DNA of 64,000 nt from Octopus sinensis (GCF_006345805.1 NC_043009.1:45632001-45696000), one strand, 5' to 3'. Positions 9,291 to 54,837 are shown, numbered from the stretch's first letter. Notes: generated by a model not told the origin, from the letters alone. Program-made: numbers and translations.

Positions 9291-9940
9291 ATACACACAC
9301 ACACACACACACACATATATATATATATATATATATATGTATGTATGTATATTAATCTACGCATTTATTTCTGTATTCATTTGTTAAACTTTTACATGGC
9401 TTGCTAGCTGTCGATGGCTGTTCGCCTTTGAAAACATACATATTTCAAATGAAATTCATTCACTGATTTCAAAAATAAAAATATTACATTTCTAAATCTC
9501 TCAGAGAGATTTATACTGTAGTAACACGATAAGGAGATGTTATATTGCTATATAGGTTTTCAAAGGCGAATAGACATCGACAGCTAGCAAGCCATGCCAT
9601 TTCAGACTGATGATGAGCAATGACTCTGAAACTACTCTCTAGGTGCTGAATTAGCTGGGTGAACATAAGGACACAGAAAATGTGCCAAGGCCAACTGGAA
9701 TTGGTGTTTCCTAGGGCTAAATAGCAGTAGCATTCTTCCCTCTCATGGGACTGCCACATTAAATTGGCAACATACCATCACTTTATCTCTGAGAGATTTA
9801 GAAATGCAATATAATATATATATATATATATATTATATATATATATATATATATATATATATATATATATATAATATATATATAATATAATATATATATA
9901 TATATTATATATATATATACACACATATATATACATATAT

Positions 9941-10105
9941 CGTAGGAGTGACTGTGTGGTAAGTAGCTTGCTTACCAACCACATGGTTCCGGATTCAGTC
10001 CCACTGCGTGGCACCTCGGGCAAGTGTCTTCTACTATAGCTTCGGGCCGACCAAAGCCTTGCGAGTGGATTTGGTAGACGGAAACTGAAAGAAGCCCATC
10101 GCATA
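9941..10105 (+). mobile_element. tRNA-derived SINE family B, 5' half
   Basis: A-box-like TGTGTGGTAAG, B-box-like GATTCAGTCCC, then CCAAAGCCTTG.GAGTGGATTTGGTAGACGGAAACTGAAAGAAGCCC, ending in TA/TG repeats. Confidence 0.88.
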
Positions 10106-12642
10106 TTCATTTATATGTATATGTATATATACATATATGTGTGTGTGTGTGTGTGTGTGTGTGTTTGGTTATACATACATGTATGCATATACGTATGTTG
10201 GAACCTTTCTAACAACGATTTCTCATCGAAAAATATAGTGACATATAGTGACATATTTTTGTATGTTAAAAAATAGAGAGAAGTTTTCTAAATATAGCCT
10301 TAAAAATATAAAGCAATACCAATATCAGCTATATTTCATGTTACTATTGTTTTTGTTGTTGCACATTGTTTAACATGTGGTTAACCCTGGTAGAGTATAC
10401 CTGCGATCAACGCGCTTCTAGGTTTGACCACCGTCGCGTCTGAAAGAATTTATTTAAAATATATCTTCACTAATGTATCTATCTTTGTTAGACGAATATA
10501 ATCTTTGGTTTCCATTGCCAAAACGGCGAGGGAATAGGTACACGTTGTCGCTTGTGCTCACACTGTATTTCCTAGCTGCCTGCCATCAATTCAGAACAGC
10601 TGCTTCAGTAGAAAATATTTTAGAAAGTAATGTAGCTGTTTATGTAATTAACTTCCTTACTTGTTCATATTTTAACGGAATTTCAATAGTACGTGAGATA
10701 TTCTGTTTTCCTAATAGTCCTGCATTAAGTGTTCTTAATCACTCTTAATGTTTTGTACATTTGTTTCAGAGTTAAAATGATGTCGTCTGTATCAAAATAT
10801 ACTAGTAACTGATATTGTAGTGGGAACATTTTCAAGAACTTTTCTTGCGGTTTTCAGGAAGCAAATCTTTTCACCACATAGCCATGTTTGCCTCCGTGCA
10901 TTTTAGCAAAAGTTTTACAATATGTCACCAATGCATTTTAACAGCTAAATTTCAAATAAAGAAGATATGATTCAGCAGTAAATAAGATATCAAGCCCGCA
11001 AGTAATTTTATATATATATATATTATATATATATATATATATATATATATATATATATATACTTTTTACGTTGATTTATAGTGAAAAATGTAACATACTC
11101 TTTACATATCTATTATACTTTTACAGTTTTACAGTCCGGTCTAAAATTACCAGCGCGAAACATCACCTTAGATATATATATATACGTTAATATGAATTTA
11201 CATATAATTATATATATATATGTATATGTGTATATATATATATATATATGGATGGATGTGCATGTGTCTGTCTTCATATGTTTCATCGTGTTACATCTTT
11301 CCTGTCTTTTAATCATGTCGTCTTACTTTGAAGAATTAGTATTATTTTGATTTATTCACGTATATTTGAACTATTATTGAAATTGTTTGCTTCGTTTTGC
11401 CTTGATTTGTGAGCAATATCTGTCTTGCTTCATCTTCCCTATCTTTGCATTTTACACTTCTATTTTTATGTCCCAGTTAAATTATCCAATTCCATTGATC
11501 TTTGCCTTTGAAAAGAAATCTCACTAACTTCGTTTGATACATTTTACTTTATTCCTGTCACTTGTCGTTCTTGAAATAAACTTTTTTCTTATTATAATAT
11601 AAATATTAGATGTTCACTTGAGATACACTCAATGCAACTAAACTAACAAGTACTATATCGTTTGACGTCGTAGTTTCATTTCATAGAGTTCGTCACAAAA
11701 ATAAAAATAATAATTAATTAATCTAATTAATAGTTTGTGAGAAAACGGAAAACGAAGAAATTGGTAATCTGCATCATTAAAAATCTTACTGAACAGTTCA
11801 TGAGGTTGAATCAGATTTGATATTAAGTGTTAGACCTTGATCATTAGTTTTGTAAAAGCAGTTAAAATGCTTTCTCTCTGTCTCTTTCTCTCTCCAATAT
11901 CTCTACTTAAAGTAGTTGTAAAACATCAGATTTTATTATCCAAACATCCTACAAACCGTTCCACACCTCAAAATTATGTAATAATTCATGTTTATATTTT
12001 CATTTTATTCACGCTTTACATAGACAAATATTTAAAGCGGCAACGATCTACATGCATCACGCAAATCTACTTCAGGAAACTCTGCTTTTCTTTAGCTTAA
12101 ATAACTCTTTTATTTCAAGTTGTGTGTCTCTGCCGATAATATCAATGCAGCCGAGTGGTCTCTGTCTTTTATTATGGCGCGGAAAACTCTAAAATATGAA
12201 ATCTGATATGGTTTCGTGGCCAGAAAAGCTATCCTGCGTTAAGTAATGATAATAGAGATGAGTTGAACCTATCTATAAATCGCCTGCGCAGACAGGCGCT
12301 CACGTCGTCAGACATTTTGTATCCTCATGAGAAACCTGGATAAAAGTGCATATAAGCTCCTTCGTAATCTCTACACAAGTCGTAAAGAACGTGTGGGCTT
12401 CTTGACTTCAAATACTTGAGCGCTAGGTATTTTGGAACTTGTTACAGACACTGCTCTAAAGAAGTCTTTGTTACTATCAGCGGCCTAGGACCCAGGGTAC
12501 TTGAAGTTGCTAACCTTACCGGAGCTAACTGGTTGGTGCTTTTTATTTTCGTTTATGGCCAGTCTTTCAGAGTTTTTTGCTTATAGAAGCAGAACGAGTC
12601 AATTTTCACACGCTGGTGATTATATAATATTTATTCAATAAT

Positions 12643-13040
12643 AAGGTTGTGAGCTGGCAGAATCGTTAGCACGCCGGGCGAAATGCTCAGCGGCATTTCG
12701 GCTGCCGTTACGTTCTGAGTTCAAATTCCGCCGAGGCCGACTTTGCCTTTCATTCTTTCGGGGTCGATAAATTAAGAATCAGTTACGCACTGGGATCGAT
12801 ATAATCGACTTAATTCGTCTGTCTGTCCTTGTTTGTCTCCTCTGTGTTTAGCCCATTGTGGGTAGTAAAGGAATTGGTATTTCGTCTGTCTTTACGTTCT
12901 GAGTTCAAATTCCGACGAGGTCGACTTTGCCTTTCATTCTTTCGTAGTTGATAAATTAAGCACCAGTTGCGTACTGGGGTCGATTTAATTGACTGGCCCC
13001 CCCCCCCAAAATTTTGGCCTTGTGCCTAGAGTAGAAAGGA
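12643..13040 (+). mobile_element. SINE family A, dimeric form
   Basis: Full head, two cores, linker, C-run and GCCTTGTGCCTAGAGTAGAAAG tail. Confidence 0.92.
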
Positions 13041-13054
13041 ATAATTTTTCAATA

Positions 13055-54229: not shown

Positions 54230-54450
54230 TTCTACTTGTTTCAGTCATGTGAACATGGCAATGCTGGAGCACCGCCTTTAGTCGAACAAATCGGCCGCAG
54301 GATTCATTGTTTGTAATCATTGTACGTACTTTATCAGTGTCTTTTGCCGAACGGCTAAGTTACGGGGACGTAAACACAGAAACATCGGTTGTCAAGCGAT
54401 GGTGGGGGTACAAGCACATACACACATACACTTCTTTCTGGTTCCGTGTA
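54230..54450 (-). mobile_element. SINE family B, 3' half, diverged
   Basis: ACTTGTTTCAGTCAT...GCTGGAGCACCGCCTTTAGTCG...GCTAAGTTACGGGGACGTAAAC. Confidence 0.8.
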
Positions 54451-54601
54451 TGAAATTGCAACACTTAATTGTAGTTCATACACCTATTGTCATCTTTTGT
54501 TTTTCTATAAATTTCAACTACGTATATCGCCATGTTGATTCGCTAGCTTCTGCACGCAATTTTCTCTCTCCTTGTTTCTCTCCGTGTTTCTTTTCTGTGT
54601 A

Positions 54602-54639
54602 TCTTTCTGTTGAAGAGCGTAGGCTCGAAACGTAAATGA
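54602..54639 (+). ncRNA. Decayed minimal hammerhead variant in a Penelope-type pLTR-like repeat
   Basis: UCUUU-CUGUUGA-A-GAGC-GUAG-GCUC-GAAA-CG-UA-AAUGA. Stem III is the ACGU palindrome; the core has A6U and stem I has one mismatch. Confidence 0.45.
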
Positions 54640-54837
54640 CTTGTTTTATTTATATTCCTGAGCGCCATACTAATGCAATTGTTTGTTTGTACTCCACCTG
54701 CCTTCGTCTTTTGTTTATTTTCATAAAGCTTCCCGTTATATATATATATATATATATATATATTATATATATATATATATATATATATATATATATATAT
54801 ATATATATTATATATATATATATATATATATATATAT

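Follow-up and report, generated by a model that had tools for sequence, protein, structure and literature searches.

We analysed a 64,000-nt window of the Octopus sinensis genome (GCF_006345805.1 NC_043009.1:45632001-45696000), AT-rich (GC ~34%) and dense in microsatellites, and found in it a dispersed set of hammerhead ribozyme (HHR) motifs: three are intact, three are relics with a single substitution, one is a degenerate twin and one is a false positive. These motifs are likely to be minimal hammerheads (min-HHRs) of the type known from Penelope-like elements (PLEs), carried on short non-autonomous retroelement insertions. The insertion units, ~160-960 bp long, devoid of open reading frames (ORFs) and mutually unrelated, would resemble either solo pseudo-long terminal repeats (pLTRs) or dispersed retrozyme monomers, and half of the window copies appear, judging from their core changes, to be inactivated relics.

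Hammerhead motifs occur above chance expectation

Motifs were sought with three descriptors. Under the strict descriptor, a motif had to show CUGANGA and GAAA, a helix II of 3 bp or more, A15.1-U16.1 closing a helix III that does not exceed 12-14 nt, a position 17 other than G (H17), and 4 or more contiguous bp in helix I. The bulge-tolerant descriptor was the same with one bulge permitted in helix I, and the loose descriptor accepted up to one substitution in the 5' box together with 4 of 6 helix I pairs. Dinucleotide-preserving shuffles, made globally or in 500-bp blocks, and the reversed sequence served as null models.

The strict descriptor recovered two loci, 19687-19605(-) and 23261-23219(-), for 0.017-0.04 expected, a number reached in 0/300 and 1/100 shuffles. 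The bulge-tolerant descriptor gave three loci, the third being 29083-28993(-), for 0.02-0.03 expected. The loose descriptor gave six for 0.98 ± 1.04 expected (the highest count among 100 shuffles was 4), adding 30953-30865(-), 54602-54639(+) and 15043-14998(-). No descriptor matched the reversed sequence. The CUGANGA box by itself was only mildly in excess, with 34 occurrences for 22 ± 4.6 expected. Motif density is thus above that of dinucleotide-shuffled sequence, and the motifs retained, with one homologous partner, are the following:

14998-15043, minus strand: h15, relic, A9 to C (CUGAUGC); loose descriptor
19605-19687, minus strand: h19, intact type I min-HHR; strict descriptor, Rfam Hammerhead_1 22.7 bits
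23219-23261, minus strand: h23, intact 43-nt min-HHR; strict descriptor
28993-29083, minus strand: h29, intact core with a bulged helix I; bulge-tolerant descriptor
29532-29623, plus strand: h29.6, degenerate inverted partner of h29, core lost; BLAST homology
30865-30953, minus strand: h30, relic, A6 to U, in a module at 30712-31090 between (TA)n arrays; loose descriptor
54602-54639, plus strand: h54, min-HHR relic, A6 to U; loose descriptor

An earlier interpretation made from the sequence alone (hereafter, the sequence-only reading) had reported eight CUGANGA/GAAA motifs with pairable stems, at least five of them minimal hammerheads. It gave no individual coordinates, and its eight motifs were mapped here by inference. 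Three proved intact and three one substitution away, while h29.6 has lost its core and a motif at 9.6 kb fails the core rules. The figure of at least five was therefore too high, as only three cores are intact, and one of these, h29, can fold in a competing way and its helix I is bulged.

These counts bear on the simplest alternative, namely that a short degenerate descriptor found chance matches in AT-rich, repeat-rich DNA. The mild rise of CUGANGA agrees with it, as does the emptiness of Rfam at its gathering threshold, and since the loose descriptor expects about one match per window, approximately one of h15, h30 and h54 could be noise. Yet the strict counts of 2-3 against 0.02-0.04, the loose count and the blank reversed control argue otherwise, and several features recur that no descriptor imposes: palindromic 8-mers, a tail of ~100 nt running to (TA)n, and an inverted-tail layout. 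Moreover, a motif of the same kind in Argonauta is conserved in two repeat copies (see below). Chance is refuted for h19, h23 and the set collectively, though not for any single weak relic, and as a general account we hold it to be very improbable.

Further searches were negative. A descriptor with a U3-A8 covariant core found no match in the window, the h23 and h19 core patterns had no exact match in collections of metagenomes and prokaryote genomes, and an 83-aa ORF spanning h19, used as a protein-database probe for further copies, found none.

Organization of the intact hammerheads

The core C3-U4-G5-A6-N7-G8-A9...G12-A13-A14, with A15.1-U16.1 and an H17 other than G, is present in h19, h23 and h29. 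Around it, helix I is open and 4-5 bp long, helix II spans 5-10 bp and helix III has 2 bp in the monomer. Helix II stems amount to 6+5 bp in h19, 10 bp in h29, 7 bp in h30 and 5 bp in h23, and 52-60-nt insertions are lodged in helix II of h19, h29 and h30. The short palindromic helix III described in the sequence-only reading was borne out, with ACAUAUGU in h19, ACAAUUGU in h23 and h30, CAAUUG within ACCAAUUGU in h29, and ACGU in h54. Predicted cleavage triplets are GUC, GUA or GUU. The palindromic 8-mers (ACAUAUGU once, ACAAUUGU twice), the 5-10 bp helix II and the GUC/GUA sites are all features that the descriptor does not require.

Written from 5' to 3', h19 reads UUUUC / CUGAUGA / 54-nt helix II / GAA / ACAUAUGU / C17 / GAGAA. 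Its helix II (GAAGGC...GCCUUC) begins with G10.1-C11.1, and cleavage is predicted between 19610 and 19609, after a GUC triplet. It is carried by a module whose tail, from the HHR to the 3' (TA)n, measures 196 nt and which is free of internal inverted repeats:

19409-19898, minus strand: m19, 490-bp single-copy module with h19, between (TA)n at 19333-19408 and 19899-19916

The compact h23 reads CCAC / CUGAAGA / UUGUC-GAUCAA-GACAA (U10.1-A11.1) / GAA / ACAAUUGU / A17 / GUGG, with cleavage predicted between 23223 and 23222 after GUA. Its minimum free energy (MFE) monomer retains helices I and II (ViennaRNA). In the RNAcofold MFE homodimers of both h19 and h23, an 8-bp intermolecular helix III forms and helix II is retained.

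In h29, the order is CCAAAGCU / CUGAAGA / 52-nt helix II with a 10-bp stem and G10.1-C11.1 / GAA / ACCAAUUGU / U17 / GGCACUUUUGG, and helix I consists of 3 bp, a bulge and then at least 3 bp. Its cleavage is predicted between 29004 and 29003.

Decayed and rejected motifs

The three relics depart from the core at one position each. The first, h30, reads UUUGG / CUGUUGA / 60-nt helix II with a 7-bp stem / GAA / ACAAUUGU / A17 / CUGAA, and h15 reads GGACCA / CUGAUGC / G / GUCAC-AGGAGU-GUGAC / GAA / AGAACU / C17 / UGGCCG. The third, h54, reads CUGUUGA / A / GAGC-GUAG-GCUC (G10.1-C11.1) / GAA / ACGU / A17; its helix I is weak, and its 97-nt tail reaches (TA)51 at 54737-54838. The same CUGUUGA box (A6 to U) is found in two unrelated relics, at 30948(-) and 54607(+), which may be fortuitous, or the variant may be tolerated.

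The inverted pair at 29.0/29.6 kb noted in the sequence-only reading is real, with 81-82% identity over 154-170 nt, and its second copy is without a core. There, h29.6 shows CUAACGA, 7 extra nt and GAAACAAAUAGUU, a sequence state that marks it as an apparently inactive relic.

The CUGAUGA...GAAA motif at 9600-9650(+) was rejected as a hammerhead: it has U.U at 10.1-11.1, A15.1-U16.1 and a non-G at 17 never occur together in any register, and it is missed by all descriptors. CUGANGA sites at 12.3, 13.8 and 26.3 kb were inspected and likewise rejected. A long imperfect hairpin lies at 9395-9812, with arms at 9396-9437 and 9555-9596 (~70% over 200 nt) and a 27-nt inverted match of 96% between 9481-9507 and 9786-9812, in a 475-bp gap bounded by (TA)n; it may be another nested inverted-twin insertion.

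Modules and their (TA)n insertion context

The sequence-only reading had placed all motifs next to TA/TG microsatellites. For TA this is true, yet weak as worded, since 59 (TA)n arrays with 7 or more units were counted in the window, for which TRF returned 113 rows. A stronger statement is that five of the six loci lie inside gaps of 289-962 bp with (TA)n arrays on both sides, such gaps (≤1 kb) making up 19% of the window, and that the sixth locus, h54, has its 3' end on (TA)51. The 3' end of each module abuts (TA)n. In RNA orientation, 97-116 nt separate the end of the HHR from the array downstream in h15, h23, h29 and h54; the figure is 153 nt in h30 and 196 nt in h19.

An upstream inverted copy of the module's own 3' tail was found in m15, m23 and m29, the modules of h15, h23 and h29, and is absent in m19, m30 and h54. 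Inverted repeats in or beside the motifs, as the sequence-only reading had them, are thus confirmed for these three modules and for the hairpin adjoining the rejected 9.6 kb motif. The three modules are laid out as follows:

14887-15122, no strand assigned: m15 hairpin, arms 14887-14923 and 15086-15122, 37 nt, 95%
23122-23375, no strand assigned: m23 hairpin, arms 23122-23212 and 23285-23375, 91 nt, 99% complementary
28885-29731, no strand assigned: m29, arms 28885-29038 and 29578-29731, 154 nt, 81%; BLAST 82% over 170 nt

In m23, h23 sits in a 72-nt loop; the 3' arm is the element tail and the other arm its inverted copy, and the gap between the two (TA)n arrays (23117-23465) includes 90 nt of extra sequence at 23376-23465. 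In m15, h15 lies in a 162-nt loop, the gap between the two (TA)n arrays is 14882-15170 and the extra sequence is 48 nt (15123-15170). In m29, the arms flank ~540 nt and take in the degenerate twin HHR; the gap is 28886-29847, between (TA)n at 28847-28885 and 29848-29910, with 116 nt of extra sequence (29732-29847). All three are alike in that the 3' arm is 0-11 nt from (TA)n and 48-116 nt of unique sequence lie between the inverted arm and the array upstream.

Self-BLAST and MAFFT among the window modules disclosed no shared alignable sequence beyond the inverted pairs. Because the modules have no alignable sequence in common, several families are involved, in agreement with the sequence-only reading. 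The arms of m23 differ by 1 mismatch in 91 nt, and on this divergence the insertion looks recent; alternatively, their likeness could have been kept by gene conversion between close inverted arms.

Five of the six motifs are on one strand within 16 kb. This could reflect a shared transcription unit, as would be the case for host-domesticated regulatory hammerheads on a host transcript, comparable to the conserved intronic or untranslated-region HHRs of amniotes. However, half of the motifs carry inactivating core changes, all are in microsatellite-bounded modules resembling transposable elements (TEs), the motif families are mutually unrelated, and the ORF and domain scans of the window recognised no host exon near the hammerhead loci. 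Domestication thus strikes us as highly improbable.

Argonauta and PLE control loci

For comparison, we examined 21.5 kb of Argonauta hians DNA (L001, GCA_054771915.1 BAAFZT010000203.1) around the homologue of a long interspersed nuclear element (LINE) of the window. The loose descriptor gave two matches for 0.2 expected, and these belong to a ~155-nt unit present in two full copies, with 93% identity between them. This unit consists of a 40-nt leader, a min-HHR (CUGACGA-A-GGGG...CCCC-GAAAAUUU) and an 81-95-nt tail; one copy bears A6G. Its 3' ends abut (TA)n or (ACATTT)n, copy B is preceded by an inverted tail-only copy, and a tail-to-tail palindrome without HHR lies inside another (TA)n array. 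Such tail-only units are 5'-truncated copies, a retroelement signature. The Argonauta unit has no sequence relation to the window modules, and its min-HHR is not detected by Rfam. The unit family occupies 13548-14133 and 17564-17780 of L001. A PLE ORF between the two Argonauta HHRs, which are 4 kb apart, was considered and rejected, these HHRs being copies of the ~155-nt repeat.

Two further loci, L002 and L003, contain complete PLE ORFs with RVT_1 and GIY-YIG domains, two head to head per locus as inverted pairs. There was exactly one descriptor match per PLE ORF copy, 54 or ~170 nt past the stop codon:

L002, 2977 and 6953: PLE control ORF copies with their min-HHRs; descriptor
L003, 3543 and 6791: PLE control ORF copies with their min-HHRs; descriptor

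These HHRs, CUGAAGA-A-GACCG...CGGUC-GAAACGUC and CUGAAGA-A-GAUC-UACG-GAUC-GAAACGUC, have an unpaired A, G10.1-C11.1, an ACGU helix III and a GUC site, a design that h54 shares except for A6U. In L002, a (TATC)n array lies ~300 nt beyond the HHR. The two loci are a positive control for the descriptor and show directly the geometry that was inferred for the window modules.

With these loci at hand, the inverted repeats can be weighed as a feature of DNA transposons. If the modules were miniature inverted-repeat transposable elements (MITEs) of the Tc1/mariner or Stowaway-like type, the inverted repeats would be terminal inverted repeats and (TA)n the TA target site. Inverted repeats do occur in m15, m23 and m29, the modules are flanked by (TA)n, and mariner transposase remnants are present in the window. 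But in those same three modules one arm is non-terminal, standing 48-116 nt from the array, whereas the other abuts (TA)n, and this asymmetry disfavours terminal inverted repeats. Besides, m19, m30 and h54 have no inverted repeat, the tail-only copies and the (ACATTT)n insertion in Argonauta indicate reverse transcription from a fixed 3' end, and the same inverted-twin geometry exists in the genuine PLEs of L002 and L003. A MITE origin is, in our estimate, quite unlikely.

A second possibility concerns the source of the units, which might be dispersed monomers shed from canonical non-LTR (non-long terminal repeat) retrozyme tandem arrays that lie elsewhere in the genome and are expressed as small circular RNAs, rather than PLE pLTR fragments. 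The units are ~155-200 nt long, low in GC, non-coding and HHR-bearing, as shed monomers would be; published work makes a case for animal retrozymes as non-autonomous derivatives of PLEs (10.64898/2026.07.22.740005) and describes them as PLE-dependent with variable monomer proportions (10.64898/2026.07.22.740005, PMC7229834). Yet TRF found no HHR-bearing tandem repeat of 150-450 bp in the window, as the sequence-only reading had held, and none occurs in L001. Helix I is open without a loop 1 in any motif, so that loop1-loop2 contacts are absent, and the motif design is that of PLE min-HHRs. Shedding from such arrays overlaps with a PLE-type origin, the sole difference being the nature of the source copy, and we regard it as unlikely. 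The window does contain, at 22088-22710, 2.1 copies of a 302-bp unit with 99% identity; this repeat is mostly TA/TG microsatellite, has no HHR and is a recent segmental duplication of simple sequence.

Coding remnants and other repeats

Pfam scans, which took in all non-repetitive window ORFs of at least 70 aa, located these coding remnants:

4211-4666, plus strand: mariner-type transposase remnant (Pfam Transposase_1)
16459-19190, plus strand: frameshifted LINE with Exo_endo_phos_2 (APE) and RVT_1 domains
56.1-56.4 kb, minus strand: weak LINE reverse transcriptase (RT) fragment
~62.8-63.1 kb, minus strand: mariner-type transposase remnant (Pfam Transposase_1)

At 47% identity, an Argonauta hians protein comes closest to the LINE ORF; an exact look-up of this ORF, made as a route to further copies, found nothing. 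The LINE, whose strand is opposite to that of h19, includes a perfect tandem duplication (43 bp x2; 19102-19188), and (TA)46 comes after it, at 19318-19408.

A SINE-like (short interspersed nuclear element-like) repeat of ~200 bp is present in four copies of ~80-83% identity (24299-24501, 40141-40337, 50531-50696 and 54227-54431), one of which terminates 170 nt upstream of h54. ARAGORN recognised no tRNA-like head in it, and tRNA-derived SINE heads as hammerhead carriers were looked for and not found.

Rfam produced more than 300 sub-threshold matches to microRNA families (mir-297, mir-3149, mir-5014, mir-1277 and similar), e.g. at 22.2-22.7, 23.5-23.7, 31.5-31.8 and 38.0 kb. They were rejected, as all are self-folding TA/TG/ATAC microsatellites and none attains a gathering score. 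Plant-miRNA-like matches (MIR533, MIR408) are spurious too, and stem from an inverted microsatellite pair formed by (GA)34 at 53700-53767 and (TC)17 at 53932-53966, 165 bp apart.

Interpretation and proposed mechanism

The idea of ORF-less PLE- or retrozyme-like remnants, put forward in the sequence-only reading, survives in its core, because the same design and geometry are seen in two PLE loci and in the Argonauta family. Alongside a min-HHR design of PLE type, the modules bear signatures of retroelement and PLE-type insertion: a target in microsatellites, a 3' end that is defined, and an inverted twin truncated on its 5' side. What did not stand is the retrozyme in the strict sense, with tandem arrays and loop-loop HHRs, nor could a pLTR derivation from a particular PLE be upheld, as no homology to any PLE and no PLE ORF was found in the window.

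We propose that a PLE RT/GIY-YIG enzyme, provided in trans, would copy the units from RNA, and that target-primed reverse transcription into microsatellite DNA would generate the 5' truncation and the inverted twin as by-products. Where source copies are active, two HHRs in their RNA might pair via the 8-nt palindrome into a double hammerhead. This would cleave 3' of C17, A17 or U17, with 2',3'-cyclic phosphate and 5'-OH ends as the products. Such cleavage would trim multimeric or read-through transcripts. Both the catalytic role of the window motifs and the dimer mode are predictions.

A number of observations weigh against the PLE-type reading. At the level of coding sequence, the Pfam scans gave domains of LINE and mariner only, with no PLE RT/GIY-YIG, and tblastn of 120 PLE proteins (RVT_1 + GIY-YIG, retrieved with a motif-consensus probe) against the window had no match, as the sequence-only reading had anticipated in reporting no such ORF. 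At the level of the motifs, h19, h29, h15 and h54 have G10.1-C11.1, which h23 (U-A) and h30 lack, these two holding U-A or A-U at the expected place; the unpaired nucleotide between A9 and 10.1 is missing from h19, h23 and h29 and, among the window motifs, exists only in h15 and h54; and ViennaRNA folds a competing hairpin, GAAACCAA/UUGGUUUC, in h29. Stem differences among the window motifs provide no independent covariation evidence, such a test being circular because the motifs were selected for pairing. The one-sided extra segments of 48, 90 and 116 nt are mutually dissimilar and exceed the 30-40-bp tail described for PLEs.

The Rfam search, a check suggested in the sequence-only reading, adds to these points: nothing in the whole window passed the gathering threshold. 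Hammerhead_1 (RF00163) scored h19 alone, at 22.7 bits for a gathering threshold of 34 (E 0.0012 in local search), aligning it end to end with every core position matched; h23, h29 and h30 went unreported. These misses carry little weight, because Rfam also misses the clean Argonauta min-HHR. From the literature, PLE min-HHRs cleave poorly in vitro (PMC4209133), and insertion was normal in HHR mutants of the one PLE that has been reconstituted, cleavage being dispensable for it (PMC11167929).

A bolder proposal, which we consider doubtful, is that octopod genomes harbour still-active, ~155-200 nt, hammerhead-bearing, microsatellite-targeting non-autonomous retroelements with a stereotyped, possibly functional hairpin insertion product. 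In that case, the hairpin would be composed of inverted tail and unit with the ribozyme in the apical loop, and m23 (91-nt arms, 99%) would exemplify a recent one. Such a layout of hairpin and ribozyme might then have a function, for example in self-primed reverse transcription or small RNAs, instead of arising as a by-product of PLE integration.

As min-HHRs of this kind are already known from PLEs in many animals, the window adds cephalopod members, probably from a lineage in which such min-HHRs had not been singled out before. The result is annotation-level knowledge with no new mechanism, and it fits the known picture in which minimal hammerheads arise widely as by-products of active Penelope-like retroelements. 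A compact unit (leader, min-HHR and ~100-nt tail) is documented along with a recurrent inverted-tail hairpin in microsatellites, and the data illustrate that the curated Rfam model misses most of this hammerhead class. If the families are active, they would be small, convenient substrates for probing what the PLE hammerhead does.

Comparison with known systems

Against the Rfam Hammerhead_1 model, h19 aligns fully but falls below the gathering score, and the remaining motifs are unreported. Metazoan non-LTR retrozymes (PMC7229834; Li et al. 2026 preprint) are likewise small, AT-rich and non-coding, and the type I HHR that they carry has a helix III that is short and palindromic. What sets the window apart is the lack of tandem arrays, of a loop 1 and of loop1-loop2 tertiary contacts.

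PLE insertion is characterized by (TA)n targets, an inverted 5'-truncated copy and a one-sided tail (Craig et al. 2021, PMC8557442; Penelope/Poseidon, Neptune, Naiad and Hydra clades). The window units differ in being 10-20x shorter than PLEs and non-coding, and in having an extra segment of 48-116 nt instead of 30-40 bp. In common with PLEs, the window modules lie in microsatellites, mainly (TA)n, an inverted 5'-truncated copy next to the direct copy gives rise to inverted repeats, extra sequence is present at one end, and the HHR is close to the 3' end.

The closest parallel is with PLE min-HHRs (PMC4209133). These occur in PLE pLTRs, with opposite-strand pairs 100-700 bp apart, a dimer mode ('double hammerhead') has been proposed for them, and most genomic min-HHRs are likewise solitary (PMC4209133). 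Unlike this system, the window has neither a PLE ORF nor a pLTR pair, h19, h23 and h29 are without the unpaired nucleotide, h23 and h30 are without G10.1-C11.1, and helix II of h19, h29 and h30 contains 52-60-nt insertions. On the other hand, the window motifs are of type I: helix I is short (4-5 bp) and open, and helix II is enlarged, a stem that in PLE min-HHRs has 6-8 bp or more. Their palindromic helix III (ACAUAUGU, ACAAUUGU, ACGU) would predict action as dimers. The unpaired nucleotide after A9 together with G10.1-C11.1 is shared by h54, h15, the Argonauta motif and the L002/L003 HHRs. As in PLEs, sequence heterogeneity between families is strong, and the copies are mostly single and dispersed, with one opposite-strand pair ~550 bp apart. 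PLEs are, in addition, an abundant TE order in octopus genomes (PMC13282606, PMC8967140).

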